Counted from the first letter of the stretch, positions 1 to 51,767 are shown. The stretch: DNA of 64,000 nucleotides from Pocillopora damicornis (GCF_003704095.1 NW_020845998.1:248001-312000), one strand, 5' to 3'. Program-made: numbers and translations. The notes: generated by a model from the letters alone, not told the origin.

Positions 1-3000
1 GTCCACCGTGGGCAGGAGGGGGATTGGTGCAGGATCGTGTCCGGTACCTGGTACCCTCCCCACAGGTTTTGTCACACTGTGACCAGCCGGTCCAATCAGT
101 GTAACCGCCATCATCTGGTTGAAAGATGACAAAAATATTCAATCAGGAAACAGTTCTCTCATTTATTAATTTAAAAACTGGGTTCATATCTTCTCACTTA
201 CGTGGACACGAAATGAGATTGCAGGCTTTAGACTCCATAGCAGGTCCCAGGCCTACTGTAGCGCAGTCACGGCCACCGTTAGTTGGGGAGGGACTGTTAC
301 AGGTTCTGTATCTCTGCGTCAGGCCTCCACCACATGTGACGTCACAATCGGACCAGTCACTCCATACTGAGTACCCACCATCCTCTGCGAACGAAATAAA
401 ATAAATTGAAGAGAATTCTAGAAGAAACAAGAACAGTGAACAAGAGAGTTGGCATTCTGTTGTTTGTTTTTTTTTTTTTTTGTTCGATTATTTGTTTGTT
501 TTTCACTATGAGTTTGTTAATAGACATACCTGGACACAAAAGAGCATTGCATTCTCTCGTTTCCAGCGAGGGACCTAGAGAAGAACAGTCCACGCCACCC
601 TGGGTATCCTTAGGGAAGGAACATTTTCGTGTTCTCTCCTGTGTACCTCCACCACAAGTGGCCGAGCACGAGGACCAGTGGGACCAATCTGAGTACACTC
701 CTGTAACGGGAGCTATTGAAAAGCAAAAAAATAAACTCATTGTTATATGCACCTCTTGCGTTAACGCAACAAGTCATGCTATACGTCACACAACATATCA
801 TATTATATGTAATGCAACAAGTCACGTCACACGTCAAGTTATAACTGTAAAGCACTTTTTACTTACCTGCAAATGTTGCCGGCATAGGAGTGGTTCCAAC
901 TGAAGAGGATTCTTGGAGTTCATCGGAACTAGGAGTCTCTGTGGCTGCACTTGTTCCTTGGGAGTATGCCTGGGTCGCGTGGCTTGTCACATGACCTTCG
1001 GTGGCTGAGGTGGCCTTCGAAATAGTATGGGTGCCATTGGTAGCCACAACTCCTCCAGTAGAAGTGAATTTAGTTGTCTTTGGTGATTCTACCGTTTCTC
1101 GGCCTTCTCCTGAAAATAAAGTAGCCGCATTTTCAGCCCATGCACAAAAAGAGTTTAGTATCTACAAAGTTTACTTATGATTTGCGCAAGATTTCCTTAC
1201 CAAGACAATGCCCCCACATTCCATCAATGTCGTAGTTAGACGTGGTAGCACACCAAGGCCTCTTGTTTTCATCGTCTGTACAGCCAAAATACTGGGTTCC
1301 ATGATAAACGAAAGGGAAAACACAGCAGGCGCCTTTACTTGTTCCACCTTCAGTCTCCACACAACGTGCGTTCAGACCTGTGGATATAGAACCGAGTACT
1401 TATTGAGAAAAATGGGCGACTACCTCATGAAATTTCTGATTAACCTTATTATTATTAAGAAATGCTAAGGATTTCATAATTATTCTCCAAACTGCGAGAT
1501 TCATCACTAATATAATTTTATAACGTTATTCCTCTGCCGTGCATGCACGTTACCCATCAATACTACTTTGGATTTCAAAGCCAGGGTCTTCTCTCCAATT
1601 GGAGCAATTGATTGTCAAAAATATTCCGAAATTACGTGAGTTTTGCTCTTCTCCGCACTGTTCCAGAAAACTTGTTCCACCTTCTCAACCAATCACATGC
1701 AGAACTTAAAAACCAAGCGCAACTTGGTAACCCACGTTTCTTTCCCGCGCTTTTTCCCCGCGATTTAAAGAATTTTTCTTTCTTTCTTTCTAATCAGCCT
1801 TCTGACTGGCTAGTATTTTTCTTTTCCAATTTATCTGACTAGCCACTGTGATGACCTTAGTTTTGGGTTTACGATACTCGATTGGAAAGTGCTCCCGTAT
1901 GATTTTCATACTTACGTATGAAAATCAAAGAGGTTGTTAGATATCGTACCTTCCTCTACAGGACACTCAGGACAACATTTCCATCGTTTCTTAACCGGAT
2001 TACGGCAGTTCAATTCAGGACACTCTATCAATGTACAGCGGATTTTACCATCGTCGCATTTGCATTCGGGCGTGCAAGGGCCTGGTGACCAGCGTTCGCC
2101 ATGCTCGTGTTGTATGCCGTCATAGTAACAATCTGAAAGGAGAGAATAAAAAACCACGATTGAACTTTATTTGCTAAAAAAACACACATATAAAGGTAGC
2201 ACAGGATATTGTATTCCTTGGCACTGAATTCAAATTCAGCCTCAAAACGTTATTTAGTTATGTATTCATTTTTAATTTTTTGACATATGCACTTCTAAAT
2301 CTATTATTTGATTTGGCAAAATATTTTTTGAGCATCAAAATGATTTGGAAGATCTTAATCAAAATATAAATTTGCTGAACCATTAATTTATTTTCCAATT
2401 TGTAGGATTCTCATGAAAATATTCTTGAGCATTTAAAGTCTTAAACTGTAAACTTGGATTCCAATTTGTTACTTACTTGCTTTATGCAGTGGCCCAAATT
2501 GCTGTGTTACGTTAACTGACAAGCAAATAAACAAAAATCAGCATCCACAAACAAGAGATCAAATGTAAAAAAAGACAAATAAACAGAGCAATAACAAAGG
2601 CCACTACTCACCAGGGGTGGGTGAGACGGTGGGTGCAGCTAAACCAACTGGAGCAGGGGTTGGAACTACAAACAGATCATAAGTAAGAAGCTCATCAAGC
2701 TTGAAATATGATTAATCTGCAACACCTTACCTAACCTCTTTTACAGTTTTAATGTTAGTTTAATGGTTAACAACAATAAGCCAGGTCTGGAGAGTCAGGC
2801 ATTTCCTCACTCTAGTCCACTAGGGGGGCTTTCCTTCATAGATTGGGACAGGATAAGGAAAAACTCAATCATTGACACTTTATTTGGTTACGGTTACAGT
2901 TTCAGTAAGTACCTTTACAGAGCCCACACTTTCTCTTGCAGTTCTTAACCAACCAATCATTATCGCATGCATGCATTGGGTAATCACTACAATCTTCATG

Positions 3001-6000
3001 ATCTTTTGACACACAAGCACCTGTTGAAAGAGGTCTCCTCTATAAGCTAACCAGAAATTACCCACATAATATTTGATTTCATTTAAGCATGAGGTATTAA
3101 ATATAAACAGAAAAAAAGATTGAGAGATTAGTATGCTTAAAAAGTATTAGTAACATTCAGGATGGCTTTTACATGCAAAATAATTTAGAGTATGTTGTGT
3201 TACAAAAGTGATTTTTTAATACTGAATTTCAATTATATGTGCAAGTTACTATTATTTAGATTGTTTTTATCCATTTTGTTTTTAAACCTTAGGAGTTTAA
3301 TTTAACATTCTAAATAATTAAATATTTTATATTTAATTATTCGTATTAATTTAGCCTTTATTTTCCATAGTTTATGTGAAAAATGGTGAGTTTATATTTT
3401 AGTGGTAATTTGACTGATCACCAGCTTGAGAATTCTCACCTTTTGATTCACCTTTTCCTGCGGGTTCTAACCCTAAAAATTGAAACATGCATTTGAAAAG
3501 GCAATCCTCTTTTGCAACCAGTTATAAAATGCCTCTTAGAATTCCACAGTTTGCAGTTGTAAAGTAAAATCCTGCAACCATTTGCCTTAAGGCCCTTTTT
3601 TTAGGGTATGTCAACTCTTTAGCTAAAATTCATAACAATTCCTGTGGTAATCTTAGAGTTCCGGTAAGGCTATCAGAAAAAGCCCTGTATTTTGACTCTG
3701 TAACCTCATATGGTTAATCTTGTTACAGAAAATGTTGTTGTTCATTGTGGTTTTGTAGATAAATGAATGTTTAATTACTTTTCCTACCATCTAGAGTCAA
3801 GCTATCAATTGTGTTAATCACGATGTTTCAACTGTTATACTGCTAGTCTTTGGAGCAATGTGGTCAAAGGCAAAGGTGTTGCTATTTATAACACCTTAGT
3901 TTGTTATTACTGGTGTGTTTTGGTACACTGTCATTAAGGAATTTTGATCTTTGTTATTGTTTCAACCACTATTTTGTATAGTATAGTCTTAAATACTGTT
4001 CAGTGTTAGGTTTGTTGGAGGTAAAGCCATCCGTTCAATTTTTTTCAGAAAAGTCAGTGTATTATTGAAAAAGTTTGTATTAGTCATGACAAGACTTTAT
4101 ATTAACCATTTTAGAACCATACTAGTTTCATTAAAAGCAAATTTACAAACAGCGTTAATAAATTAGCAGATAGAGCCAGCATTAATATTGACTGTAATGG
4201 TTCAAGAAGACTCATACATATCACAGCAAAGTTTGTTTACTAATGTCAAGATAATAGAAACAACCAGATGTTGAAGAATAAAAATTGTATGGCCAACAGG
4301 ATCTGGCCAATTTTAATAATATATCCACCTTATCCACCAAACAGACAGCATTATACAAATGTTAGGAAGGAATTATCCAAATAATGAAGAATAACTTGTC
4401 TGGCACATAGTGTCATTCACCCTCAAATATGGTCAAGACTGTGAGCTTTAGAATGTATGGGTAGTCTTGAATTTTTCCCTTCTTTTTTCTTTCTTTTTAC
4501 TTTTCTTCCCAAAAGCCTCTCACACAACAAGGTAAAGATTCCACCCTTTCAAATTTTCTGTTCATCATCAATTCAGAGACTGAATTCCTCTAATTTCAAG
4601 TTTTTTTCCCAAAATATAATTCTCCAATAACCTTGATGACTACAGCATTTAGGAAAAACAAAACCCCACATGTTTTTTGTTTTTGCATTTGTTTGTTTGT
4701 TGTTTTGTTTTGTCTTGTTTGCTTTTTGTTTGTTTGTTTGTTTGTTTGTTTTTTTTTGGGGGGGGATTATACTTTGCAGAGATCATCTCTGTTACATAAA
4801 ATTAATTCATGCCAATGTATCTCCATGAAATTAGATGTATTTAGAAAAGTTACACTTAGAACTGTCGTCCTATATTGCTAACTTGCGATCTGGTATCTGT
4901 AAATCACTTTAAAGCTCTAAAGCCAGGATCTTCGCTTTTCAAGGTCGCTGTACACATTCCTGTTTCACGCGCGAATATCTGTCACATTTTCTTTCAACTC
5001 CGACTCGCGATCGAAGTCGCTGTCTAAAATTTAAAGCTTTCTAAATAAGACTTCAGTCTCATCAAATCCACCTACCTTCACAAAAACCGCACTTTTTCTT
5101 GCAATTCTTTCTCATCCATTCGTTTTCACAGCTTTCTATCGAAAAGCGACTGCATTCCTTATTATCCTTGCAAACAGCTGAAATTAATCATATGCCAAAT
5201 AGCTTCATTTTATCGTATAGATGACTGCTATCCTTTTAATTCGTCGGTCAACCCATTATTTTCCAGGTTACTTTAAACTCCATGTCGGGGCAAATTTTCT
5301 GCGTCTGCCGCTACTTCTCCGAGGCTAAAATTTACGCGCCTTGTCCGCCATATTTGTTGTTAAACCCCAGTCCCCGCTCAAACAGATTCATAAATGTAGG
5401 CCTGCAAAGCATATACAAAGTGTGGCCGAAAATATCTTTAATCGTGTACTTACGTCGACAAAACTGGCATTTTCTTGGACAATTAAGTTGAACCCATTCG
5501 TCATTACACTGGTTCATGGAGTATCGCGAACATTCACTCTTGTCGTTACACCAGGGTGCTGGAAATAACAAATAAAGCGTCAGCTATACCTAATATTCTT
5601 CATTCGCCTCCTTTAACCGATAAGGCCCCTGATGATCGAAGGGTGGACAACGCTATCCAGTGGATAAATCTCTGTCTGGTGGATAGCACAGTAAGTTTTG
5701 TTAACACTTACTGGCTGGCTAGTAATATATCTTTTTAAAAGCTTCGTTCCCACTTTTAACAACTGGGGCCATGGATTATATTGTCTAAATGAAGACCCTT
5801 ACGATTGAGAGAGCTTGCTTCGAAAAACAGAAAAATTTGACGAAATCACACGAGATTAAACAGCTTTAATACCAATCAGATAGCTGCAGAAGAGTCAATG
5901 TATGCGTATCTCTATTTAATCGTTAAGAAAAGGCCTTAGTTACCTTCTGGTATTTGAAGAATAGTTGTCCCGTGACTCATTGTTACATTGATATGATTTT

Positions 6001-8590
6001 TCGCCGGACCTTTTACTTTAATCTTAGCTTTATGTTCGTCTTCAGCTTTAATGTTTGCAGGAAGCTTGACAACAATGGTTTCCACCATGGGTACTTTGTT
6101 TGACACCTGGTCCTCCAACGCCGGTTTCCCATTTTCACCTTTAATGTTTACTAAAACAGGCTTTCGTGATGTCTCCAATGATTTTGTGACCTCAGAGGGT
6201 ACTGTGACAGACAGCTCCGTGTACGGTTTCTCTGTTGCGTTATTTGTTGTGTTATTTGTTGTCACTGCTTGTTGAGGTGTCGTAAGTGTTGAAGTTGTTT
6301 CTGTGATACACGAAACAGTAGTTATATCTTTCAGGAAATCCAAGAAGGTTATTGATAGACACAAGATATAATCAAATTGAACAAAGTGGCTTTTATCTGG
6401 CATGCGTACTAATGACAAGCGTGTCCCCTGCTTCTAGAGTGGCGTTTCTTTCCAGCTATGCTTTAAATCGCGTTTCTGACAGCAATGTATGTTACTATGG
6501 GCAACGCGCGCCAGGGATGACTTTGTACGAGTTTAATTTGAGTGTGTGATGAGAAAACATTGAGGATTTATGGTCGTTCACCGACAACAAAGTTCAGTTT
6601 TATTTTCTCTTTCATGGATATGACTTTACCAAGTACAAAGATTCAAAAATTTATGCAGTGCTCACCATTGCCGCATATTTTGCATTTCTTGGGGCAGTTA
6701 ACTTTCAACCACGCCTCGTTACAGCTGGCCTCTGTATATTTACCACACACAGGGTCGTCATTACACCAAGTTTCTATGGGAACAAGTGATATATACGTTA
6801 ACAGAACCTCAGAAAAATGTTTGATTATTTTTGGACCTGTGATCACTGAAGAGTATTTTGCCCCCTACTCTAAGGCAAGAGAATACCAGTTGACATTCTC
6901 TTGTCTAAAGTTAACATTACTGGATTAAAGTGGGCATCATCTACGATGACAACTTAAAGTTCTCAAATCATCAACAGTGCATAAATTTTCGTAAGTTTCT
7001 AAAAACTGGCGATGATTTCCAAGAAGAGAAATGAAGTGGTAGTTGCACCGATTTTCACGACAACCTCACTTAAAAGGAAGATACTGTGGTCACAGAGCAA
7101 TTTTTCAATCGACTGTCGCAAATAATCTGGAATTGAGTTGGTTTTGCTTTACTTCGCGTTGTGATCGGTCTAGAAAACTCGCGCCATCTTTTTAACCAAT
7201 CAGATGCAAAACTAAAACCAATCACGACTTGGTCGCCCGCGTTTCTCGTGCTTTGGTTAGCTTGGTTAGTTTGCTTTGAGTTCTCATTGGTTATGAAAGG
7301 AATTTTTCTTTGATTGGTTTTTACGATTACTTTGATCGCTTTTGGTTTTACGACACTTGATCGAAAAATGCTCTTTTTCTCACTAGGTACTCTATTTACT
7401 CACCGTAAACGTTTGGCTCAGCTGTAGCATTCTGCTCTACGACGGCTGCAGAAAAATAAGTGCAAATTGTAATTTGAGATTGGACCAAATTGCTGTTAAG
7501 CAATAAAAAATACCACTACGGAAAAAGTTTGTATGTTGACAATGCGCTATCCATCATAAATATTATCGGCAAACATATAGTTTTTAAACAAACACGCAAC
7601 CTAAAGTTATGCAAAGACCGATGAAGGGATTGCATAGACTCCTTATCATGTTTGATTTAAGTGAGATGTATGATTTATTGCACCAAATAGGTGGCTGCAT
7701 TAAAGTCGAAATGAAAGTCAAAATATTCTTCGAACTCTCAACACCGATGATGACCACTTAAGCTCGATATACGAATCTGCAAACCATAACCGTACTCGTA
7801 AATTCTTAGAGTCATGTCTCATAAGAAACTTGTTGAAACTGATTTTCTTGTTACGAAGGAAGACAAATGAGTCCCAGACCCTAAAAATTAACTGCAGGAT
7901 ATTCATTTCACAACAGAGCAAAATTTCTCAGGCTAAAAATTTACCCGACCCTCTTCTAATAGCTCCTTTACGTAATGAATCACAAGGCATTTTCTCTTGA
8001 ATTAAAACATGAATTAAATTGACAAAAAAGCTACATGAGGCGATGGCAATGAAAAAATTATTCTGGAGTCAGAGTTAATTCATAAATGGCCTAATGGTCA
8101 CATGATATAGCTAGATTTCTTCTTTAAATGGCAAAAACCCAAACAAAAAGTTTATATACCCTCTTAGGGCAAATAATTGGTGTAGATGTTACATTTGCGA
8201 CAATTAGCTGCACTGGAGAGCTTCTGTAGCTGCAATTTAACTTAGGTCGGAGTAAACAATTGTATTAAGACAATACGGTAGGTTTGTCTCGGTGAAAATG
8301 TTCGAAACTCTCAGAAATTTCTACAGTTTCCACGCACCGTCATCAAGTAACGAGCACCCGAATGAAAATCGTAAAATCGGTTAATTTTATAAACGTCTTT
8401 CTGAAAACAGTGCAAAATTATCTTAAGACGGCCTAAATCACTACAATGAATACATTTTGCAACCTAAATCTGACCGATCAAGGTCAGAGCTTATTTTTGA
8501 CTTTCATCCATCACCAGATAAAAACTTACTTTGTGCAAACACCGCTAGCAATGATGCAATAATCACTTGAAGAAATAAATTGAATTTCAT
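1..8590 (-). CDS. Gene F, short form (3' end outside window): secreted multidomain protein, signal peptide - ShKT x4 - S/T/P linkers - VWC - FN2 - S/T-rich - TSP1 x3+
   Basis: GT-AG exons, all phase 1: 8590-8530 ([20 protein letters not shown], signal peptide), 7445-7404, 6773-6666 (ShKT), 6300-5944, 5558-5454 (ShKT), 5177-5076 (ShKT), 3472-3440, 3020-2913 (ShKT, not in ORF track), 2665-2612, 2515-2477, 2132-1950 (VWC), 1377-1201 (FN2, [10 protein letters not shown]...[15 protein letters not shown]), 1109-867, 712-530, 384-202 and 114-1 (TSP1, WxxWSxC..TCG.G...R.R.C). All internal exon lengths are multiples of 3. Confidence 0.9.
1601..1894. mobile_element. MITE-like repeat family 1, diverged copy
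   Basis: CAACCAATCACATGCAGAAC core and TTTTGGGTTTACGATACTCGATTGGAAAGTGCTC end match 7094-7374. Confidence 0.7.
4673..4756 (+). repeat. Imperfect (TTTG)n simple repeat
   Basis: Direct reading; intronic. Confidence 0.85.
5624..5770. mobile_element. Short MITE-like element with GGCCCC...GGGGCC termini
   Basis: Imperfect terminal inverted repeats (GGCCCCTGATGAT / AACAACTGGGGCC) and internal TATCCA/TGGATA palindromic motifs. No matching TSD seen. Confidence 0.55.
7094..7374. mobile_element. MITE-like repeat family 1 (~280 bp, terminal inverted repeats)
   Basis: Starts AGAGCAATTTTTCAATCGACTGTCG and ends CGACACTTGATCGAAAAATGCTCT (inverted repeat). The core AACCAATCAGATGCAAAAC...TTTGAGTTCTCATTGG is shared with three other copies in the window. 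Confidence 0.8.
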
Positions 8591-9280
8591 GTTTTCCGCC
8601 GCTCGCGATTCGTTGTTACCATTTTAGTTCTCACATGGCAAACAGGAAAAGCCTCCACGAGCTTTGCATTCATTAACATTAATGTTCGGATCGGCCGGTT
8701 TGTCCATCATCGCATCAACGGCCACCCGCAAATCCTCGCAAAACACTACGAGTCTAACGAGGAACTCTCTATATGAGACAATTGCATGGCCACAGGAATC
8801 GCCAGAGTTTACATAGTGTTAACAACTAAGCGCAGTTCAAATATACAACAAATCAAATCTGGGCGCGCTTAAAAATTTATGCTGGGCGGGGAAAATCTGT
8901 TTGTTTAGAAAAATTTTGTTTGCCTTGATGAAATTATTCGGAGAAATTTCCAAGGAGTTAGGGCGAAAATTTTGACAGTTTTATCACTTGCCGGTCGCAA
9001 CACCTATTGAAATGAGTCACGGTCTTTTTTGAGTATCAGACTGCTTTATGTAGGAGAAATGCTGATGATTTAGTTCCAAAATATTTATGCTATTTTTTAA
9101 GGGAACAATTCCTCTTAAACTTCAAAGTTAGACGTTCATGATAAAAATAAATTTTGTGTTCATCAACTTTTATCAGTAACTATATTTGTGAAAAAAATTT
9201 AAGGACCTTTTTCTGACGTGCAAAGTAGATGGCTGTTTAACCGGATTTTCTGTTTCTATTCTATTAAAATTGCTACTTAC

Positions 9281-12200
9281 GAAGCTGTTGCATGGTCACA
9301 GGGACACCAGTACCCGTGTTGTGTCTAAAATCCACGGTGATATTCTGATTTGGAGTCAGCGGAGTTGCTGTGGCTGTCGCGTTGCTGATAATCTTATCCA
9401 CAATTCCTCCCGCAAAAGGATTCACTACATCAGGACCGCTGGGCATGGGAGGAGCCTGCGTTGGGAGTGATTGCGCAGTACTCGGCTGCGTTAACGTCAA
9501 GTTTTGCACAGTCACGTGACTTGGAGTTTCATGCATTACAGGGACCTCAATGGGAACCGCTGGTTCTTTATCGGTTTCAAACGAAATTTTGATGTTTTGG
9601 TTTTGCTTCTCGGCTGGAGTTGCTTCCAAGCTTATCCCATTTCCTTCAGCTGTTACAGGAGATGTTTCGTTTCCAAGAAATGAAATTTTAATATTTTCCA
9701 TATTACCCTCTGGTACTGGTTGTAAGGAGACCTCGTTTACACCTTGCAAAGGCTGGTTTTTCTCGATGAAAGAAATTCGTATTTTTTCTACACCGTTGCT
9801 TTCAACTGGTTGTACTGCTGAAGGAATGTCCACAACCCAGTCGGGATTCTTTTTAATTTCTAAAACTTCCATTTCTTCCACTGGCACAAGTTCACTTCCG
9901 TTCATAACGAGAAGAGGCTCTGAGGTAGGTTCCATCGTTCCCACGTGAGCTGAAAGCGCTTCTTGTGGGGTCGACGAATCGTAGACACCTATTTCTGAAC
10001 CCGATGTCGCACCAGCCTGTACCACCGGAAGTATGTTCTCAGACGCTACTGTCTTGTTATATACATTATATAAGGGAGAGCCATTGGTCGGTACACTGAC
10101 TTCCGGGTAAATTGTCTCATTAGCTATCTCGTTCGTAGCTACGATTGGTGCAGTACCTTCGTATTTTACCTTAGGGTAGGTATAATTATTGCGGCCCAGA
10201 ACCACCTTGGAAGTGTCCGGAACTGTAGTCGGAGCGTTCTCCCATCCCTTAAGCGGATTTACTGTCGGCTGTGCTGTTGCTCCCAAATAATTTGCAACTT
10301 TATCTGTTTCTGGAGTTGCCTCTTCTGCAAGAAAAAAGGATGGTAAACCTCTGTCATAAGAGAAAGTGTCAGGTGAGAGTAAGACATATTTTTTTGTACT
10401 ATTATGAAGCATTATTTACTTTCCACGACGTTTTGAAACTGTAAGAAGCATACAACTGTGCACAACACTCCCAGTTTTCACCATTACCCATGTACGGTGT
10501 ATACACCAAACGATACATGCTACCCAGATAGTCAAACTCTGCACTCACCTGTTCCGCAGTGTCCACATAGTTTTGGACAGTTAAGGTTGATCCAGTCATA
10601 CGAGTCACAGTGAGTCTTTGAGTACATTGCGCATGCGTTTTGGTCAACGCACCACGAATCTAAAAAGAGCAGATCATTTATTCACAAGTTCCATTATACG
10701 GTAGAGGTAAAATTGGAACATGGGCCAGATGGCTCATCTTACTGGAGCTAGTTTTTAGAGCATTTGATGATTGAAACTGCTGCTTCTCCTCCTAAGCTTA
10801 GTGAGTGCTAGTCCATCGAAGGTTGCCCTTCCCTTACCCGCCACCCAAACTGTACAGATTTCTCGAATTGGTTCTTTCAGTTTTAACTCGTGGATATGCA
10901 AAGCGTTAGAACAAGTTATGTGGAGATTTGATATGTCAACCTCTTGAGGGGGTGGGAAAGGCAGGCATCTTATTGAAGATGGCAGACTGATTGTTAAATA
11001 TGGCGGATAAATTGGGGCAGATTTGCGCGGGGATAACGGGTCAATTCTGTGTCTTGAAATGTCAGTATCATTGGCTGTAAGTGCTACACCACCGGATATT
11101 CTAATACGTCTGCAGAGTATATCCACGAGTTTACCATAGTGTCACTTTGATTTAAAGACACCGATGTCAGATAACTACTTTAAAAACTGTGCGTACCGCC
11201 ATCTTGGATCATAAGCAACTTTATACTTCCCACTGTAATCTGTTTGATCCCCTCCATACTTTTACGAACCTTTGATCGATGATAACTTTAGCAACCCTAT
11301 TACGTCAAAGCATCTAAAATGGCTCTTACAAGGAAGTTCAATTATTGATGTTGCATGTATTTGTTCTTAGTTTTACACAGTTTGGTCCCTGTTTCCCATC
11401 TGCCCCACAAATCTACTTCTTTATGAAATTTTCATAATTTTAACGGTAACTTGCTCCATCAATGGCGTCTTTCTCAAGTAAGTGTATTACAGAACAAAAC
11501 AGCCTAACAACTACAGCTCGGACAAAAGATCTTAAAGCAAAAAGTTTTGATCCAAAGGCAAGGGCTATAGTTCCGACTTTCACTGTTAGCGTGACTCACT
11601 AAAAAGCGTTCTTTTCTATTCAAATATGCTCGATGACAATGATCGTGGAGGTTTCATGCGGACTTGGGATCTTTGCATCTTTTAGATCAAGTTTAAACTC
11701 TGATACTTTCTTTAGTTTCTCTCCACATAAACATCGCGTCCAGACAGAAGAAGAGGAAGCTTCTTTCCCTTGTTTATGTGTTTGCTTAGAATTACAATTG
11801 TAAACAAGATTACTTGTTTTTGTTTTCTTTAGAGATGTGATGCTTTTCATTGACAAAATTCGAACGGTAAGCTTCGCTAGCTCTCTCTTTTATTGGTTAG
11901 GAACATGAGCAACGAACGGAAAACTGGAGAGGTTAACGCCAAAACCAAAGAAAAGAAAAATGCTAATGGAGTTTATTGATGTGTCTGGTATCTCTTTCAT
12001 GATAGTTCAGAAATCCTACATAACGACAGAGAAAACATGCCTAGCTTTACGGAAATTTTTTCTTGTTTTGTCACATGGAATAACATTGAAATAGCGCATA
12101 CTCGGGCGCAATTCAAACTTATCGAAGTACATTTTCATGATAATATAAATGGTCTAATAATCGACCGAAAATTGTATCAGTTTTTGATTCAGTTGAAAGA

Positions 12201-32699: not shown

Positions 32700-32880
32700 A
32701 AAGCAGTTGTTGGTAACAGTAACTGACGTTTCGATGAATTTTAGTGGAAGTCATTGACAGAGTCAAGTGACGCTGATGATGACTTCCACTCAAGTTGCCA
32801 TAACGCTTCAGCCACTGAAACTGACAATAACTGACAACGGTTTTTTCAGAACTGCTCTCCTCTGAGTGGACGATCACATT
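32700..32880. repeat. Degenerate palindromic element (Penelope-type/hammerhead-like relic)
   Basis: AGTGGAAGTCAT (~32743) and ATGACTTCCACT (~32779) are perfect inverted arms extended by looser pairing. CTGATGA lies on one arm and GAAAC on the reverse of the other. Confidence 0.45.
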
Positions 32881-37600: not shown

Positions 37601-40600
37601 GCTCACGTTTGCCACCGATGGTACAAAGCCTGTTGTGTTAGAAGCAAGTGAAACTGTTTGATTGATTACTTGGATGGTTTCATTTGCAGCTGGCTGTTGC
37701 GCGGCGACAAGTTGCTGAGCTGCAATTGGTGCAGCAGGCTGCTGAACAGCCGCAGCAGCCTGTCCTACTTGGGGAACTGCTGGGTTAGGTGCTGCAGGTG
37801 CACCAGCATTAGGCACAGCGGAGGCAACTGCGGGAGCAGGTGTTTCAGCCGCTACAGGAGCAACACCTGGTGTTGCACCTGCGGTCGGAGCAGCTGCAGA
37901 TGTACCAGCAGCAGGAACAGCTGCGGGCGCAGCTGCAGAAGCGGTGGTTGAGGCAGCTGCAGGGGAGATGCCGGCAGCAGGAGCAGCCACAGGCGCAGCA
38001 CCAACGGCAGGGGTAGCAACAGCAGAAGCTGGAGCAGCAGCCTGTCCAGCAGGAGCGGCATCCTGGGCGCCAGGAGCTGTCTGCTGAGCCGTGTTTTGCT
38101 GATAAGGGTCGGCAGCTTTTCCCTCGTCAACGTACTGCATATGAACAGGATGCTCGTCCGGGTAAAGGAATAACCATTTCCTGTAATTGCTCTGGTAGTC
38201 AAAAAGCTTGTAGCTGGTTGTCGGGACAACGTCGGGCTGTTTGGTTGGTGAATAGTCATTTGGATGTCTAAGGAAAACGACATCACGTCTATCGCCATCA
38301 TCTCGTTTGTCTATGTGTTTGGCAGAGTGTTTATTCTTGTGTTTCGATCCACTTATTCCATGCTTTTTGTCTCCTTTCTTGTAATACAAGACGGCAGGAA
38401 GCTTCATTAATTCAGGTCCTGTAATGGCGTCGGAATAATAAATATTTTCATTATACAATCAAGTTTTAAACAACCAGCTTTGGCACATCCTTATTAATTC
38501 TAGAAAAAAACAACAAGGTTGCCTGTAATGCATTTAAATTTACCAGGAATAAATCCATTGGTGTGGAACGCAACTGCTACCGTCATTTTGGGGGAAAATT
38601 TAACGTTAACTAGACGACTGAACGGCAAATAGGCCCATCAGAGTTTTCTAGCCTAAGTGGAATCATTTTGTGCGATATTAGCACTAATCGATGGACAAAG
38701 ACAACTAGGTGACCCTTCTGCTGTGATAAAACAGAGTGCTATACCTTCATATTCACAGAGTCTGCACATTCTGGGACAGTTCAGCTGAACCCATTCTGAA
38801 GCGCAATCAAGATCACTGTATTTGGAGCAGTAGGAATGGTTGACACAAAATTCACCCTTTGGGGCTGAAAGAAATTAAATAGAGATTTCATTTATTATCT
38901 GCATTTAATGGTGAAATTGGAACCAGATCTGAAGGTAACTGATCGGCAAGGTAAATAATCTTATGTGTACGATTTACCATTGTATTTCTTGCTTCCACTT
39001 TTGTGAACGGCATGTTTTGATTTCTTGATGGCTGTTCAAGGAAAAACGTAGAAGGAACGACTCAATAAATACACTGAAATAAGCAAGAGAGAGTGAATAA
39101 TGTAGCGCATTAAAGAGAGGGCCTGACGCTCCACTAGCTTCCGTGGCCGGAGGTATTTTATCAGCAAGTGCCCCGCTACTTTTCCGAGAAGTTGTGTAAC
39201 CTGCAATGCAAAGGCTCCGCTTATAGCTTTTAAGGTCCAAGAGATGTAAAATCTTATATAGCGCACAGATTTCCTGAAATCATGATGTCCAAAAACCTAA
39301 CATCTTTCTTTGTCGAATATGAAGATGTTCATCATCTTTTCGCAGTCTCTTTCTTCCATAAATGTTGCGTTGCATAGGCTGTTTAAGATGCGAGGTATAT
39401 GCGGCATTTTATGTCTGTGTAGTCCCATTAAATTTTTTTGCTGTAAGAGAGGCACGGACATTGAAACTCCTTGATAGAAAAGAGGATAAAATTTTAAGGA
39501 ATTTCCTTGTACGCCTCTTTTAGCTAAATCTCTCCATGTTAAACTAAATCAAAATCCTTGATTGTCTCCCCGTCATAGATTACCCAATCACCGATAAACA
39601 TCGGTGCTTTGAGGACAAAGTCATGCTAATAAACCACGGCACAGTTGTGTATAAGTAAACAAACAATTCCTCTTGTGTCTCAGTACCAAAAACAATCAGC
39701 CATGATAAGAGTCCCAGCATTGAATGTTTTTTTTTGGAGATATAATTCCCTAACAGCTTGTGATCTCATTGGCAATGCGGGTGTTCTCTTCAAACGCTGA
39801 TTTTCTCATAATAAACTTACAAGTGCCCGTGTTGGTTTTGTAAAACCAACCATAAAAAAGTAATAAGGAAGGCCGACAATCCTTTCTAGAATATTGACCT
39901 AGCTTTGAAGATTATCAATTATTATATTGCTTGTTTTTGTGAATTTTCCGTCACGGAAAAATAAACCTATAAAGTGCCCTCTTTATCCAGGTATTTTTTC
40001 GCCCTCTTTGTTCTCCTAGGAATTAATCGATATTTTGGGAACCATCAATCTTTATCATCAGAGTCGGTGGTTGCGATGAAAGTTTACCTTTTACTGGGAA
40101 ATTGCCACGGAAATTCCATTTTCCTCTTAAAAGCCATGTACCGAACAGAACAATTAAATATTGCAAAGCGAAAAACCTGGAAAGTGAATAATCTGACTGC
40201 GGACTACAGAACTGATGGTAGCGAAATTAAGATGAACTGCGCTGATTGCTTTCATTTTGATAAAGACAGAAGTATTTCAGCGATTTCCAAACATCCATAT
40301 TCGCCTGTTTGAGTCAACTGTAAGGAAACTTTGCTCCTGCGTTTTCCAAATCTTCCAGGCTGAGCTGGTTATGCAGTGTTTGTCACTGACAGATTGACCT
40401 GTAAAGCTACGTTAATTAAATCTTCAAAGTTTTTCAATTTCAAGTATTGTTCAGCCATCCAGTTTTAGCGCATCTTAAAAAACTCTAAAAGTAATAGGGT
40501 ATTCCTCGACCTAAGATGAATTCCTACATTTAAACCTACGGTTTTATGTTTTGTTAAAATCTCACTTGAGACAGGTGTCGCCGCATTACTTGTATGTAAA

Positions 40601-41041
40601 CTTCAGCTGGTGTTTTTCCAGCTGAAAATGGCCAAACTGTTCATCATAAATAATTCACAGTGATCGGAGCACCACTATTTCGTCAGGAGAACAATAAAAT
40701 CATAGTACTTAGTGGCGAAATCATTTGTGAAACCTTGCGGTTCAATGAAGCTTTGCGTTTCAATCTTGTTGGCATTGAAGCTTTCAACCAGCATTTATCC
40801 CTGTTTATTTGCCATTTGAATTATCTTTCATATGCCATTATTCAAAGCTGGTAAAGATCACGGCCAGAATGAAAACAATAAGTCAATAGATCGATTAATT
40901 GAATTAGGAGTATATCAAACCAGGCTGTTTCAGTGGATAAATCTCGTATTTACCTTTAGCCTCCACGAGTCCATGCTGTACAGCACAAAAGAATAATATG
41001 AAAAGTGCCTTTACGCCATATCTTGTCGCCGTCAACTTCAT
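34668..41041 (-). CDS. Gene B: secreted protein (~893 aa), signal peptide - K/H-rich - ShKT - A/P-rich - S/N/Q-rich plus domain Y - ShKT - domain X - A/T/Q-rich - ShKT
   Basis: Exons 41041-40954 (MKLTATRYGVKALFILFFCAVQHGLVEA|K), 39031-38978, 38864-38745 (ShKT), 38418-37528, 37062-36508, 36129-36010 (ShKT), 35881-35441, 35163-34855 and 34771-34668 (ShKT + TAA). All phase 1, total 2682 nt. Probable 5' UTR exon donor near 41563. Confidence 0.87.
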
Positions 41042-43071: not shown

Positions 43072-46000
43072 TTAATTTTTTAACTTCTTCGGTTTCGTGG
43101 TTTTAATCTTTGGCTTGTCTTGCTTCACTACTTTATCAATTTTTTTGGCCTTCTTCACTACTTTATCACTGCTGACTTTTTTCGCCGTCTTCTTGACCTC
43201 AACTTTCGGTTTTGCATCCTCCACCTTCTTGGCTTGTTTCTTGCTCTTGACAATTTTAACATGCATCGCTTTCAGAGGAGCGTCGTTGAATTTGATTGGC
43301 TGATGGACCATCTTGGCGACCACGGGCTCACCACGTGGATCTGTGTCAAGTCTGATTGGTTCTTCAGGTTTGTCCTCAGCGTTGGCCACGCCTGATGCAT
43401 TGTCGTCATGATCATTATCATCTTCGTTTTCGTCATCAGAGCTTCCTTCCCCGCTCACATCTTGGTCCTTGACAAAATCGTAAAATACCAAAGAAAACTA
43501 CTATTAATACCATTATCGGAGGATCTTGATTGGGTCACAGCAACGTTTATCTGACTTTGACGAGGGCTTTTTGAGTTCACGATCTATTTCCTTTATACCC
43601 GAGATTTAATGCTTGATTCATGAGTGAAAATATTTGTGATCATATTGATAATATTGAAGCGTTAAAGTAAAAGGGGACATAACCGTGTTTGTATAGCCAC
43701 ATTTCTTTCCGAAAAACACTTTCTGGCACATAAAAATAAAAAAATAGTAATAAGCTAAACCAGTTGTACTAATAATGTATTTGCTTACAGTAGCATCTTC
43801 ATCATCAGCATTGTCGTTATCATCATTGACGTCATCATCGTCACTGTTTTTCTCGCTGGCGTCATTATCACTTCGGGTCTGTGTCGGTTTGATCACTGGC
43901 TTGGCAATAACAGGTTTGTCGTTCTTCTTCTCGAGTGTCTCGACTTTCGCTGCCACTTGCTTCACAGCATCTTTAACTTTCTTGGTCATTTTCTTAAGGA
44001 CTTTTTGCAGTTGTTTCACACTGCCTACCTGTTTCGTCTCAATCTTCTCTTCCTTCTGCGTGGTCTTATCCTGCTTCTTTATGGTGTCACTGAAATGTCT
44101 CTTTTTGCCAATGGTGATGTGGGCGTTGCCTTGACGTTCTTAAAGAGAAAAGGAAAAGTTTACTTTCATATCATAGAACTAATTATTTTTTTTAGCCTTC
44201 ATTATTCAGTGGTGAGCCAAAATTATTATTCTCCTTTACAAGTATTATAAAAGGGTTAAACTCTCTATCATCCTTACAAGATTTTTATTAAGACATTGGT
44301 CCTTGACGACTTTACATTGTGCAAGAATGAATTGACGTGATGTAACACGATGTTATTTTCGGTTGAACTAGAAAATTCTTGTAAATAAGAATTATATCAA
44401 CTCGTACGGGCGTGTGAGGTTTCCTCTCTCGTGTGTTTCACTACTAAAAAGGGGGAAATAAGCTTGCACCAACGTTCTGTCAGTCAACTCTGACAAAAGA
44501 AATATAACCTACAAATCGTAATCTTCGTTCATTTTCTCTCACTTGGTTTAATTTTATATTCTGCTCACCATAACCACATGTTCCACATTTGGATTTACAC
44601 GTCTCCCTGACCCAATGCACCATGCAAGCAGATGCGGCAAACTTCTTACAGACATTTAAGTCTTGGCAGCCAATGAACACTCCATAAGGAACTAAACAGG
44701 CCATACAAATCAGAAATTTCAAGTTAAACTTTCAACCATTAAAAGGATATAATACAGTGTTCGGTTGTTCTTAAGGCTCCTAAAATTACGAGATTTGCAA
44801 ATCTGAGCGTCCATCTTCTTGCTCAAACACTCATTGAAGTTTTAGTCAAAAACAAATGGACAGCTATCAAGAATAAAATTCGTCGTTCGCGACTTTCATA
44901 CATAAAACAGCTATTACTGCAAATGTGTTGAAACACTGACGCACCGAAGTATCACACGATTATCGAGCAATAACACCATTAAAGCACTTAAACTGTTGCT
45001 AGGCAATCAAACCCTACTCCCCAATCTCTTATTCAGATCATTCTTTCGGAGGATGAGAATGAGAGAGTTCCTGGGGAAGAAGCTACGCAGCTTCCCTGGC
45101 CTGAGGCGAGTACTCTGCTGAGGAACCGCCGTTTTTAAGAGAGAGTGACATGAGAATGTCTCTCCTTTTCTCATGCGTTACCGAATTTTCAATGCTCTAT
45201 TTTCTGCTTGTATAATTAATATCTTAGCCTTCTTCTCACCTTTACATAAATCACAGCTTTTTCTGCAATACCTCTGCGTATAAACATCTCTACATTGTCC
45301 GGTCTGGGCGTAATTCTTGCAGTAAGGCTTGTAGTCTTCACATGGGAACAATTTCTCTACAAAAAAAATCATTCAGAGTTGACAAATGAATTTTCTTCTA
45401 TAAAAAAAATTCATTTGCGTCGAAAGTAATCCTAGATTGCTTTAGATTTGCTTTTCTTCACTCTATGATTAGTCCAGAAATCTTGCGCCACTTTATCAAC
45501 CAATCAGATGCAAAACAAAACTCAATCGTCTCTTGGTTAACCGCGTTTTCCCGCGCTTCGGTTAGTTCACTTGTTTTAACTTTGAGTTCTCATTGGCTCC
45601 TTCTGATTTGTCCCTTACTTGTAATTGGTCGTTGTGATCACTTTGGTTTATGTTTTAAGACACCCATTAGAAATGCACTCCATTCCACATAAAACCTTAT
45701 GATCAGTCAAGAACTCCTTAAATGCAAGACCTTTCAAGGTCTAAATTTTTTCTTTACAGTTCAGATTATTTTTGAGGCTTGAAACAAAGAGTATGAGAGA
45801 AATCCAGCGAAGTGTATTGAATATTTAAGGTGTAAGTGTTATCAAAATCAGAAAGTGAAAACCATGTACAATAACTTTGATTTCATGACAAATACGACAG
45901 TCAAAGCATTTGCTGTGCTCTTTGGCTAAAAAGAGCAAATCTCTGCCGATAAAGGCAAACAGTAAAATTCCTACCTTTCTCTTCTTTTGTTAATTTGAGA

Positions 46001-48191
46001 TCATCCATAGCTTTATCTTCAGCTAAACAGACAATGAAACAAGATATGAGGATCTCACGAAAGTGAGAGGAGTGCGTTTCTCACATCCATGGAAATAAAG
46101 TCATATGAAATAACTGTGTATCAATAAGGGCTGATGAGCACATCAAGGTAGTAATAGTTTTTTCATCTTTGGATTTTTTTAATGATTTTGTCTCTGCTTT
46201 ACCACGGCGTTTCTTTTAAGGTTCACTTTCTTTCATCGCATTATTTTATTCATTCATCCATGCATGCGTCAATATTGTAGACGATATCACGAACCTGTCT
46301 TTGGCTTCTTTGTTGCAGGCATTACTAAAGCTTCTGTGAGGAAAAATAAATAAGTTATTAAGTTCTGAGTCGGTCAACAGCTTTGATTCTGTAGCCTTTT
46401 ATTGTATCTAATTGTATATTTTTGTAATTTCAAATTCATTAAGAACGAAAGTCTTAAGATTTAACCCAAATATAGAAATATATTGCATCGGATATATGTG
46501 TTACTTTAGAAAAGGCTTTGACAAAATGCATCACTTGTGATACTTTCCACAGGTGACCAAACATGCAACATCTTTTGAACTGACGGCAGAGCAGTTAAAA
46601 AACGATTGTTCTTATCTATGAGTCTCTTGATATTGGAAAAAGACATAAAGCATAAAGAGTGGTGTCTTCCGAACAACACAGCTGTCAAGCGTCGGGCATG
46701 CGCGAGGGAATCAATTTTGGCCTGCCCAACGCGCGAATTTCCTGCGCAAAATTCTAAAAACGAGGGAAGTAACTGCTGTCTTGAAGAATAAGCGAATAAA
46801 ATTGTAACGTTCGTAGTAATATGTGAAAGGCAATAAAAATAGGGAAAAGGACAACTCAAGACTTTTCTAACACAAAGCATATTCGAGTACGGGTATTCTG
46901 CTGATCAACCCTTATATTTTGAGCTTTATTAAAAAAGATGTTCGCTTTTAAAACACAATGAGTTACTGGCTTGTGGGGTTGTTTGTAACTCGTGAGATAC
47001 AACTTGGTTCTGACAATGTAATTGTCATTGCATTGTTATTGCAACGAATGTCATTACATTGTTATTACAACGAATGCCCACTCGCAGACGTTTGACCTCT
47101 GTGTTCTCCCGAGCTGATCTCTATCAAGGCTTGAAGCTAGGGAGATACACTCGCTATGCACAAAATACAATAGTTATTGGTACGATTAGAACTTTTTCAC
47201 GTGATCATACCTGCCATCACAGGCAGCTTGCCGTTGCTGTTATTAGATGCCTTGCTTCCAACAATGAAAGTTGTTGTATCTATGGCAACACAATCATGAG
47301 TGTTTGTCACCACTATAATGAACCATGTCTAGTTGCAAAATTATATCGATAAACAAAGAGGGAGTAAAGCGTAAGTTGCAGTGTATGGTCCGATATTGGC
47401 GTACCTGAGGGAGGACCTTGCACGAGGGCCCCGGGTTCTTTTGGTGCTTGACTCACGGGATTGCGCAAATTCATTTTGACGCCATTGACTTTGATCTCTG
47501 TAACAGTGAATAAAAAAAATATTTATATTTAATCTTCTTTATCAAATCTTAGAGTTAGAATAAAGAAGCTTACCCGGCATTTTCTGGCCTCCTTTTCCAA
47601 GGACCATGGCAAAAACTGAAATTCAAATCGAAAGCATAAAAAGAGAATCCTTCTTTCAAACGATAACAAAAGATTTAAATGTGAGGGAGAGTGGCACTTT
47701 CTGACAGCGTCCATGGGGGGATAATTATGAGTAGTACTATACGAAGGCTTAAACAGTTTATTTCCTTCTGGTGACAATGTTGTTAAGCCGGTTTCTCAGT
47801 ATAAATTATTGAATTATTGTGGCACGTGCACATTTAGCGTTATCGATGAAGTGAGCAGGAATTTTAGAACGGGAAGCCTGCACAAAGGACAGGATAGTGT
47901 TATTTTGAAATATGTATGTATAAATATTTGTACTGTTTTAACACACTACGGATAGGCCCTAATCCTCCCCTCCAATGTAAGTTACACCCTTAGATATTGA
48001 CCATTGTTGGGCCAACAAGGATGGGGTGGGTTAATGGGTTAGTTGACAGAGATTAAGATGCAAGGTTAACACCACCAACTTGAGGTTTTCTGAGGTTTCA
48101 GTTTTAACGAACCTGTGTGTTGTCCCTGCTGGGCGTAAACACAGCATGTGACTGACAGCACAGCAACCAATAGGAGCTGTCGTCTGTCCAT
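43072..48191 (-). CDS. Gene A: secreted protein (~384 aa), signal peptide - ShKT x2 - Lys-rich - Asp-rich - Lys-rich
   Basis: Exons 48191-48113 (MDRRQLLLVAVLSVTCCVYA|QQGQHT), 47615-47574, 46022-45975, 45356-45240 (ShKT), 44691-44569 (ShKT), 44138-43789 and 43467-43072 (stop). Total 1155 nt in frame; minus-strand AATAAA near 42740; probable 5' UTR exon donor near 49028. Confidence 0.87.
45410..45680. mobile_element. MITE-like repeat family 1 copy
   Basis: CAACCAATCAGATGCAAAAC...CGCGTTTTCCCGCGC...TTTGAGTTCTCATTGG matches 7094-7374. Confidence 0.75.
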
Positions 48192-50512
48192 TATCTTTCT
48201 CTGATAAAAAAAAAATAAAAACAAGAGAGAAAATGCAATGAATATAAAGACGTGTTTTCCTCAACATTCTTGACAGCTACGGAACGTTAGGTCCATGATG
48301 GTAATATACCTTCATGGTCGTTGAGGTAGAAATTACAGCGATTCTTCGAGGTTCCCAAAATTTAAGGATTCCGCTACAATTTTATCACGTGATAAGCAAA
48401 TTCGGCTCCAGATCACTTTAAAATGAACAACAAGAAAGGCGAAAACTACTTATGTCTCAAAAAATATCGTTATCAATCTCCACTTCAATTCTTGACAAGA
48501 ATTTAAATTACCTTTGTCAAGTGAAACCAAATAAGCGAGGAAATTCTATATTTACCACCCTTAGCAAAGAGAATGTTGACGTAATTCAGATATAGGATAT
48601 GAAGAATTTTTTTTTTCAATTTTTTTTTAAACAGAGCAAGGGAAGTGAAAGTATTTTATCAACTCGCTACACAAAGCAATAAACGAAAAAGCTTTTTCGC
48701 TTCAAAAAGTGCAATTTTCTAAAAAGTAGTTGTTTATAAAGTTTTGACACCTACAAAAGCTTGTTCGTATTTCAAGCTAACTGGTAAATCTATCTAAATT
48801 TCACAAATTTTTTTTTTTATAATGGATTCTACGGGCGATTTCAAATTTCCTTCAGTAAAATATTTTGCGAGTGAAAGATCGTTATATCAGAGGAGGTATT
48901 ACTTTTAACAACAGCACAATTGACAACCAAACAAACATCAACTAAAAACTGCTTAGTCAAGAAGACAATTAAATCACAAAGTCTGTGTAAACCATTTTAG
49001 ACTCTAAGAAGAAATTTATCGACTTACCGTTATATTCTTGTTCTTTTGGTCTTCTAAAATAAGTCTTAATTCTAAGTTGAAATTTTTATTGTGCAATTTA
49101 TGTCATAGACCTGAAATCCTAAACAACAGAATAACGATCTTCGATCGTGGTTTCGTTAGACACACGTGATTAGCAAAGAGCAGGTACCTCGATTTGGAAA
49201 CTATAAACAACACTTTAAATTCGATATGGACAGCACCTAAACTTTGTTTTGATTATAACATCAAAATTTGCCGGTGACCGCATGTCCCTTGGTGGAATCG
49301 AGTTGACGAACTCTTTTTTTTAATAATTCTTGTTTTAGCGAACTGTTTGAATGAGCAGAAAACAAAACAATTTTTTTAGGACAAAATTTTGAGATTATTC
49401 CGATCTCAATCTAATTTTGCAAACTTCAAAGGTTACTGGAGTTTTCGCCCCGTTGCAAGTTCGCCCCCAACCACCCTTACGAGTCCCTCCCTCGAAGGGT
49501 TACCATTGATGTTAGACATTACAATCCGATTTCAGACGGCATAGTAAGATTTCGGACGTTTCCGACTGACATCTAACACTTACGAGTATTTTCCGATGGT
49601 CCCTTCGTTTCTGGACTTGTGTCCGGTTTCGGACGATCCCGTCCGATTTAAGACACTTGTATCAGGTTTCGGACACCTGTTTCCTTTTTTGGAACAACAG
49701 CGCCCGATTAGGGACAACTGGGTCCGTCCTTGAACCTATCTGTCCGCCTTCGGACACATTGGAATGATTTCGGAATTTTACATCCGTCTTTGGACGATAC
49801 CGTCCAATTTCACACACTTTCGTCCGTTTCCGGAAGGCAGAGTGTAATATCGGACACTTTGCTTCGCCTAAGTCTCGGATTGTACCGCCCACCTTCAACT
49901 GATTTACACCTTACCAAACCTGCTATTGGGAATAACGATATTCCAAATACAAAAGAACCTTACTGCAGCAAAATGGTGGCTCTTTTTAGAGAAGTTTACT
50001 TCAATCTTCCGTTGCGCATTCTTGACAAAGCAATACAAGTTACCTGGAACCACAATGAAATTTTGTTCAACTTGAGCGTTCGAGATATAAATAATTTTTT
50101 ATGGTTGCTTATTAGTGTGGCGCTTACTGTCATCGCTTTTTAGGAAGGCAGGCTCTCTGAGAATTGATATGTTGCATATTATAGAATATATATTATTATA
50201 TTTTTCAAATAGACCCTAAGTTGTCGTGCAGCTTTTCAATGATAGATCACGGATGACGTCAAGATACGGTGAGAAGGAAAAAATGGCACAGAAGGCGTAG
50301 CCACATTTTGGCGGTTTCTGCGATCTATTACCGTACAGACCCACGGTAACGTAGAACCTCTTTGTTTTATATGATAAAAAACCAAAATGATTGTAATGGT
50401 GACGTCGTCTATGCCTCTGGCCTCCAGTAGAGAGTGAGTAAGGACCAATCAAAATGCGTGTATTGCAGCTTATCATATAATTTTATATACATACACATCT
50501 TTTTACATGATA

Positions 50513-51667: not shown

Positions 51668-51767
51668 NNNNNNNNNNNNNNNNNNNNNNNNNNNNNNNNN
51701 NNNNNNNNNNNNNNNNNNNNNNNNNNNNNNNNNNNNNNNNNNNNNNNNNNNNNNNNNNNNNNNNNNN
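51668..51767. other. Assembly gap (100 N)
   Basis: N run; 100 is often a placeholder for unknown size. Confidence 1.

Follow-up and report, generated by a model that had tools for sequence, protein, structure and literature searches.

The stretch analysed here is a window of 64,000 nucleotides from the stony coral Pocillopora damicornis (GCF_003704095.1, NW_020845998.1:248001-312000; C2633:248,001-312,000 in our own-genome searches), and positions are counted from its first letter unless they are given on the contig. The window contains the larger part of a cluster of seven neighbouring, co-oriented genes for secreted proteins, designated A, B, C, D, E, F1 and F2, which extends over ~76 kb in total and has gene A at its right-hand end. 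A stop-to-stop frame scan revealed a dense series of coding exons on the minus strand, from 48,191 down to base 1, and no comparable series on the plus strand in 1-48,191. The first-pass annotation had described a one-strand, modular cluster of six genes within the window. The modular build and the common orientation of all genes were borne out, while the gene count and the extent of the last gene had to be revised: the former gene F consists of two genes, F1 and F2, and F2 runs ~28 kb further to the left than the window. Start exons were sought by a hydrophobic N-terminus together with a donor site, consensus splice sites were tabulated and critical junctions were read directly. The joined frames were checked for stops and length only, and similarity searches were run exon by exon. 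The resulting gene models are as follows, X and Y being two modules that are described further below.

Gene A, 43072..48191, minus strand, 354 residues, intron phases 1, 1, 1 and 0: signal peptide 48191-48113; ShKT 45356-45240; ShKT 44691-44569; K/D-rich 44138-43789; K/D-rich 43467-43072, including the stop.
Phase-0 intron of gene A, 43,788-43,468.
Gene B, 34668..41041, minus strand, 875 residues, 7/7 introns in phase 1: signal peptide 41041-40954; ShKT 38864-38745; A/P-rich 38418-37528; S/T/Q/N-rich with domain Y and a four-cysteine tail 37062-36508; ShKT 36129-36010; domain X 35881-35441; A/T/S/Q-rich 35163-34855; ShKT 34771-34668, including the stop.
Gene C, 29519..32287, minus strand, 410 residues, 3/3 introns in phase 1: signal peptide 32287-32215; domain X 30873-30442; S/A/P/Q/T-rich 30375-29761; ShKT 29631-29519, including the stop.
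Gene D, 22393..26745, minus strand, ~358 residues, 3/3 coding introns in phase 1: signal peptide 26745..26598 (start codon 26682); domain Y copy 1, 25113-24793; K/E/P-rich 24494-24066; exon 4, 39 nucleotides within an assembly gap plus 23471-23260 (domain Y copy 2, Cys-rich end, stop 23271-23269); exon of the 3′ untranslated region (3′UTR) from 22636 to 22393 or lower.
Assembly gap (N), 23472..24044, in intron 3 of gene D and covering the first 39 nucleotides of exon 4.
Gene E, 15799..20579, minus strand, 597 residues, intron phases 1, 1, 1, 0 and 1: signal peptide 20579-20507; VWC 19458-19270; FN2 18894-18721; S/A/P-rich 18230-17713; P/Q/T-rich 17398-16930; Q/S/Y/N-rich 16169-15799, including the stop.
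Phase-0 intron of gene E, 17,712-17,399.
Gene F1, 9273..13227, minus strand, 410 residues, 2/2 introns in phase 1: signal peptide 13227-13158; ShKT 10659-10549; Cys-free exon of 350 residues 10324-9273, including the stop.
Gene F2, 5′ part, 1..8590, minus strand, at least 619 residues in the window, 11/11 introns in phase 1: signal peptide 8590-8530; ShKT 6773-6666; Cys-poor conserved exon 6327-5944; ShKT 5558-5454; ShKT 5177-5076; ShKT 3020-2913; VWC 2132-1950; FN2 1398-1201; T/S-rich 1109-867; TSP1 712-530; TSP1 384-202; TSP1 from 142 to below 1.

All seven models are open throughout, with AG and GT at every junction. Each gene begins with a signal-peptide-like exon of its own, as had been annotated, and in all seven cases this exon ends in phase 1. 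The statement that nearly all introns are of phase 1 was likewise correct, since 33 of the 35 coding introns in the models belong to this class and 2 of the 35 are of phase 0. All ShKT, VWC, FN2, TSP1 and X exons are of the 1-1 type or run from phase 1 to the stop in these models, for which RNA was read in the case of gene D only. For gene A, we rejected a signal-peptide-like frame at 43,513 on account of its overlap with the pyrimidine tract of the 43,467 acceptor.

The division of the former gene F follows from the conserved terminus of F1 and from the separate signal-peptide exon at 8,590. Among the 36 homologues of the large F1 exon, all nine that were read (from corals, 51-99% identical) end in ...QQ[LHQ]R[KE] followed by a stop, which corresponds to the F1 stop codon at 9,273-9,275. 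The F1 junctions were read directly, and its signal-peptide exon is kept at the expected place in the assembly of a related coral (ERZ25067556). The signal-peptide exon of F2 (8,590-8,530) has a strong phase-1 donor and is found at the same place in that assembly. The body of F1 is present as a single copy in the genome; it contains three copies of a short motif of the type ..N/K-I-K/R-I-S-F.. (9273-10324), and in other corals, repeats of the type V-V-H-E-T/N-E-N enlarge the part ahead of the C-terminus, so that the proteins reach 444-480 residues. The Cys-poor spacer exon of F2 (5944-6327), located between the first and the second ShKT, is conserved with 62-100% identity in 31 proteins and has no Pfam match. 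When the F1 body and the F2 spacer exon were used for word searches, open frames at the level of exons were returned, and no spliced products.

To the left of the window, the F2 series continues with ~28 TSP1 exons, two weak WSC-like exons, three VWA exons, a low-complexity exon of 517 residues rich in Q, T and S, and exons for Laminin_G_3, PA14 and GON. It ends near C2633:219,900, where unrelated plus-strand genes follow, and this gives the gene a size of ~37 kb. The TSP1 copies outside the window were identified by motif, one of them being checked with Pfam, while the three copies in the window score 39-49 bits with TSP_1 (PF00090). F2 thus appears to encode a giant adhesive matrix protein with four ShKT domains, VWC, FN2, ~31 TSP1 domains, three VWA domains, LamG, PA14 and GON. 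The combination of an N-terminal ShKT-VWC-FN2 part with a C-terminal PA14-GON part was matched to no named protein.

Gene B is a single gene, as a single Acropora protein carries its order of modules collinearly across the junctions. This Acropora palmata protein (RefSeq XP_074626433.1, 685 residues) displays the gene B architecture in the order ShKT, A/P, Y with the Cys tail, ShKT, X, low-complexity and ShKT, and its cluster also holds models from A. millepora and A. muricata. A division of gene B into two genes was rejected, as 36,508-36,129 contains no start exon, donor and acceptor at this place share phase 1, and the Acropora protein runs across the junction. The signal-peptide exon of gene B is kept both in ERZ25067556 and in the assembly of a more distant coral (ERZ25071792). 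For gene C, the architecture of signal peptide, domain X, low-complexity region and ShKT recurs in three spliced products from other corals, which end in ...CSK as gene C does. Such spliced products located the first exon of gene C (32,287), and the gene is collinear in both of these assemblies. Gene C resembles the 3′ half of gene B.

The model of gene D, which is interrupted by the assembly gap, was compared with RNA. Logan contigs from four RNA runs of four studies were aligned with 20,760-26,759, and each of the four runs yielded one spliced gene D contig of 1,126-1,354 nucleotides with GT..AG at all joints. At the gap joint 24066|23471, exactly 39 transcript letters lie between the two flanks in all four runs, and the donor GT is located at 24065-24064. 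Exon 3 ends with a single base of a split codon, and 1 + 39 + 200 bases amount to 80 codons before the stop (23,271-23,269). Since the RNA contigs also cross the gap, its two flanks are parts of a single gene and share one frame. The last intron of gene D (22637-23259) lies in the 3′UTR and starts 9 nucleotides past the stop codon, and the piece from 22,636 downward was present in three of the four runs. Junction reads had been named in the first-pass annotation as a check; they were available for gene D only, where they support the model. In one run the 3′UTR intron showed a variant joint, 22637|23264, with four other letters, which is perhaps an allele. A piece of 32 nucleotides from intron 1 of gene D (25489-25520) recurs on either strand of numerous RNA contigs that are unrelated and highly covered, its two ends being loose there; it probably represents a short dispersed repeat that other transcripts carry.

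The proposal that the genes share modules in different combinations was upheld when all frames were compared with one another. The ShKT exons of genes A, B, C and the former F match one another, domain X is shared by genes B and C (58% identity over 151 residues, E = 2e-57), and gene E shares its VWC (57% identity, E = 5e-25) and its FN2 (44% identity, E = 3e-17) with F2. Domain Y, which is present once in gene B and twice in gene D, gave a weak match within the window (E = 0.001) and convincing matches of 1e-5 to 4e-8 between the B and D copies of different species, with a core of ~45 residues. The copies of these two domains lie at the following positions.

Domain X in gene B, 35441..35881, minus strand: Cys-free, ~145 residues, single 1-1 exon.
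Domain X in gene C, 30442..30873, minus strand: single exon.
Domain Y in gene B, 36610..36775, minus strand: ~45-55 residues, within the S/T/Q exon.
Domain Y copy 1 in gene D, 24884..25012, minus strand.
Domain Y copy 2 in gene D, 23338..23471, minus strand: its start may fall in the gap.

All 11 ShKT exons of the cluster encode six cysteines. In seven of them the spacing is C5-C7-C8-C3-C2-C, and in the other four it is off by one or two residues at one or two positions. They span 31-33 residues and are hence shorter than the 37-position Pfam model (PF01549). Only three of the 11 reach the gathering cut-off of 20.9 bits (the first ShKT of gene A with 27.1 bits, that of F1 with 21.3 and the third of F2 with 21.7), while five score 15-20 bits and three have no match at E≤0.1. 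As judged from these spacings and scores, the ShKT of the cluster is a putative divergent, compact subtype. Assignments of the other known modules are above their cut-offs, VWC (PF00093) scoring 39.9 bits in gene E (5e-10) and 46.3 bits in F2 against a cut-off of 27.6, with 10 cysteines per exon, and fn2 (PF00040) scoring 57.4 bits in gene E (1.5e-15) and 63.8 bits in F2 against a cut-off of 22.2.

Searches of the own genome (234.35-Mb assembly, 4,393 contigs) indicated that the closest relatives of most modules are found at the locus itself. One ShKT of the cluster has only five relatives in the whole genome, all of them within the cluster, and a genome scan with Pfam ShK placed at least 150 canonical ShK exons elsewhere, none of the best 150 being in the cluster. 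The single relative of the gene E VWC is the VWC of F2, domain X is present in two copies only, those of genes B and C, and domain Y has no further matches in this genome. FN2, by contrast, belongs to a large family with 65 matches; the best non-self match of the gene E FN2 is that of F2, which is not uniquely close. These local relatives of the modules are as predicted by duplication and exon shuffling within the locus, and the view that the secreted modular proteins draw on one toolkit of phase 1-1 exons was sustained in that the modules come from one local pool. Elsewhere in the genome, at least 25 FN2-like exons stand in tandem on one strand of contig C2706 (19000-65000), which looks like a giant FN2-repeat gene or array, and canonical ShK exons form tight tandem arrays on C2721, C1936, C3188, C2329, C1618 and C2150, ShK-rich clusters being common in this coral.

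Domain X is rare, with 27 clusters among 1.84 billion protein representatives, and its named relatives are from Acropora, Nematostella, Actinostola and Xenia, so that all four named matches are anthozoan. It has no Pfam match. Profile-profile comparisons of domain X, the F1 body and the F2 spacer exon gave no relation (probabilities <1%). The AlphaFold model of domain X is predicted to be all-beta, with a mean pLDDT confidence score of 61, and Foldseek detected no match to it in PDB at E≤0.001.

The low-complexity exons that lie between these modules differ in composition from gene to gene, as had been described. They contain S 20%, A 19%, P 15%, Q 14% and T 10% in gene C, A 25%, T 21%, S 13% and Q 12% in gene B, and S 18%, A 16%, P 10% and T 9% in gene E. 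The low-complexity regions of these three genes are thus rich in S, T and P, yet also in A and Q, and they lack tandem repeats.

The order of the genes proved to be conserved in other corals, in agreement with the linkage check that the first-pass annotation had set. In the ENA assembly ERZ25067556, which has ~80% protein identity to P. damicornis, every exon from gene A as far as the F2 FN2 is found in the same order on a single strand, including those of gene A and the exons of gene E from VWC through the Y/Q exon. In the more distant ERZ25071792 (50-75% identity), exons of B, C, D, E, F1 and F2 are collinear. Neither of the two assemblies comes from Acropora. In the compared corals, the signal-peptide exons have kept their positions in B, C, D, F1 and F2. 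Furthermore, the best cross-species match of each ShKT is its positional orthologue, and we therefore conclude that the architectures were already fixed in the common ancestor of the compared corals.

Beyond the stony corals, the linkage that the first-pass annotation had suggested to examine is conserved in part. In the sea anemone Actinostola, two ShKT exons of the gene A type, a B-like gene (ShKT, N-terminal region, ShKT, X, ShKT) and a gene of 2,556 residues starting with VWC-FN2 follow one another on one strand, while C, D and F1 were not detected at this locus. In the soft coral Xenia, a gene of 634 residues combines an X-like domain, ShKT, VWC and FN2. On the same strand, 5.4 kb downstream, there is a gene of 3,404 residues that starts with ShKT, ShKT, VWC, FN2 and a TSP1 array, which is the architecture of F2. 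A backbone consisting of an A-like gene, a B-like gene and a giant gene starting with VWC-FN2 is older than the split between stony corals and sea anemones, and C, D and F1 look like later additions when these gene contents are compared. The B-like protein of Nematostella is without the first two ShKTs, a difference that reveals gain or loss of modules. The gene B relatives of Nematostella possess domain X, a signal peptide and a ShKT at the C-terminus. RefSeq calls them 'mediator of RNA polymerase II transcription subunit 15' and 'paternally-expressed gene 3 protein'; these names are almost certainly mis-namings due to the Q-rich low-complexity region. Orthologues of cluster genes are on record as LOC114951055 in A. 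millepora, as XP_032236476 and XP_032236475 in Nematostella and as LOC124444299, with the neighbour of 3,404 residues, in Xenia.

An origin of the cluster by local duplication and exon shuffling within the locus is well supported. According to Patthy's rule for class 1-1 shuffling, which applies to modules such as FN2, VWC, TSP1, EGF and kringle, a module corresponds to an exon with phase-1 introns on both sides, and the exon of the signal peptide also ends in phase 1. In principle the cluster fits this rule, and shuffling was made possible by the phase-1 introns that border nearly all module exons; the cluster represents a compact case in which the donor pool is traceable to the same locus. 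The mechanism also matches that described for the gland-cell trypsins of Nematostella, where a single-exon ShK is easily gained or lost by shuffling and tandem duplicates lie ~1 kb apart (PMC6767649). The trypsins, however, are enzymes whose canonical ShK exons are scattered over the genome, whereas the proteins of the coral cluster are non-enzymatic, contain low-complexity regions and carry a compact ShKT that is specific to the locus.

Each gene combines a signal peptide on its own exon with single-exon modules that are interleaved with long, gene-specific low-complexity exons. As to function, the small proteins may be ShKT-capped matrix proteins that are mucin-like and probably heavily glycosylated, or disordered. 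Their Cys-rich modules could serve in binding to other proteins and to the matrix, and the low-complexity exons could determine the bulk properties of the material. Together with the adhesive giant, the small proteins would contribute to a coat or matrix, for example mucus, glycocalyx or a matrix between cells and substrate. We propose an extracellular structural or adhesive role. The closest functional analogue is the family of surface-coat mucins of Toxocara canis (TES-120, MUC-1 to MUC-5). Its members combine six-cysteine ShKT/SXC domains with a signal peptide and a region rich in S and T, as stated in PMC9477421 with reference to Gems and Maizels (1996) and Loukas et al. (2000). The same account describes the mucin domains of this family as diverse and the flanking six-cysteine repeats as similar. 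The same logic is present in genes B, C and F1 and partly in gene A. The Toxocara mucins are nematode proteins of 176 residues or similar size, and no ancestry shared with the coral proteins is reported. Compared with the mucins as described there, the coral proteins are much larger, possess the additional modules X, Y, VWC and FN2 and are clustered in the genome, and their coat role and glycosylation are only presumed. The diversity of TSR proteins in cnidarians has been described (PMC5446238). With ~31 TSP1 and three VWA domains, F2 is similar to the TSP1/VWA adhesive proteins of cnidarians, such as coadhesin, and it differs from proteins of this type in its four N-terminal ShKTs with VWC and FN2 and in its C-terminal LamG-PA14-GON part.

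We consider it likely that this explanation holds as a whole, that is, a tandem cluster which originated by local shuffling and whose products serve in a secreted coat or matrix. Evidence from RNA agrees with joint expression of some of the genes. Of the sampled words of 29,400-39,399, a fraction of 0.27-0.38 was found in the RNA runs of nine studies, which is approximately the exonic share of genes B and C, and B/C words and gene D contigs were present in the same bulk colony poly(A) RNA runs (four runs being compared for gene D). Several observations weigh against this explanation. The co-regulated locus for one composite material that the first-pass annotation suggested is hypothetical; bulk RNA, in which B, C and D co-occur, does not distinguish between cell types. 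No 8- or 9-mer was common to at least five of the seven upstream regions of 500 bp, and 7-mers were at control level in this crude test. No proteome or atlas entry was tied to any of the seven genes, the accessions of their relatives were absent from the full texts searched, and the Acropora, Nematostella and Xenia relatives were not listed in the supplements of the Nematostella matrisome paper. The models of A, E, F1 and F2 are predictions from splice consensus, open frames and conservation. Likewise, the putative joining of F2 and the array from TSP1 to GON in one transcript is based on orientation, phase and the Xenia gene model. The signal peptides were judged by eye, and the signal-peptide exon of gene A has a weak donor and a start without coverage in other species. 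Finally, the glycosylation of the small proteins is assumed from their composition alone.

Conceivably, the cluster could be a record of duplication only, with its genes being used in different cell types for unrelated extracellular roles and with neither a composite material nor co-regulation, an alternative that deserves to be kept in mind even if we rather doubt it. It would be in line with the chance-level upstream words and the bulk nature of the expression data, and with low-complexity chemistries and domain sets that differ strongly among the genes; clustering as such is ordinary in a genome where tandem ShK-rich arrays are common. Yet, different coral families share gene order, orientation and exon structure, and the backbone extends over Hexacorallia into Octocorallia, which hints at constraint without proving it.

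A second group of alternatives accepts a joint role of the proteins and places it elsewhere. ShKT domains are typical of cnidarian toxins, and the proteins might thus be cnida components made by cnidocytes, either as matrix of the wall or tubule or as precursors of ShKT-type venoms. About one third of the genes of the Nematostella matrisome are expressed in cnidocytes, and this subset shows an enrichment of cnidarian-specific proteins, TSR and VWA proteins among them (PMC12549020), and domain X is lineage-restricted, with anthozoan matches only among the four that are named. This possibility is nevertheless unlikely in our view, considering that the ShKTs of the cluster are embedded in proteins of 350-875 residues and in a multi-domain giant, unlike those of the short propeptide-toxin precursors, and that minicollagen-type Cys-rich domains and other hallmarks of cnidocysts were not seen in the Pfam scans of the exons. 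The host being a stony coral, the proteins might also belong to the organic matrix of the skeleton or attach the tissue to it, with calicoblastic cells as their source. The K/D blocks of gene A and the TSP1/VWA adhesive proteins do recall reported skeletal matrix proteins of corals, such as coadhesin. We regard this as quite improbable, however, as relatives of gene B occur in the non-calcifying Nematostella and Actinostola, a gene with X, ShKT and VWC-FN2 lies beside the giant in Xenia, and the acidic D/E-rich runs of skeletal acidic proteins are missing, apart from the mixed K/D blocks. In particular, a skeleton-specific role would be unlikely ancestrally, because relatives of gene B exist in non-calcifying anthozoans.

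Structural-protein gene complexes, such as the gel-forming mucin cluster of vertebrates, offer a further comparison. The gel-forming mucin, SCPP and epidermal differentiation complexes are tandem and mostly co-oriented groups of low-complexity secreted genes that arose by local duplication, and co-expression in one tissue and participation in one material are documented for them. The coral cluster resembles these complexes in its conserved linkage and orientation, and differs from them in its module sets and intron phases; for the coral genes, one common tissue and one material are hypothetical. More speculatively, the cluster might be an ancient anthozoan 'secreted-coat gene complex' that predates the split between hexacorals and octocorals and was nucleated at the ShKT-VWC-FN2-TSP1 giant. 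Modules such as the VWC-FN2 pair of F2 and E would then have been copied repeatedly into lineage-specific genes for ShKT-capped, mucin-like proteins, and gene order and orientation would be held by shared regulation in one secretory cell type that makes one material. We put this forward tentatively and would not be surprised to see it fail.

Outside the cluster, a second run of N, 100 bases in length, lies at 51668-51767 of the window. Similar short frames recur on both strands, in introns and between genes (7073-7399, 45390-45689, 1612-1839 and 52552-52843), and these are probably members of a dispersed repeat family.

Exon-shuffled and tandemly duplicated secreted proteins, as well as ShKT-capped mucins, are a kind of system that is already known, whereas this locus, the depth of its conservation and its modules without family assignment appear to be undescribed in the literature that we searched. 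Four such lineage-restricted modules have been defined here, namely X, Y, the F1 body and the F2 spacer exon. The locus displays exon shuffling with its donor pool still visible, as the relatives of the compact ShKT, VWC and X are found only within the same 76 kb, and its history can be traced stepwise from a backbone of two or three genes in soft coral and sea anemone to seven genes in stony corals. For coral biology, this provides a corrected annotation of seven genes for a locus that likely contributes to mucus or extracellular matrix and, if the genes are co-expressed, it would give access to a secreted material that matters for surface defence, adhesion or settlement.

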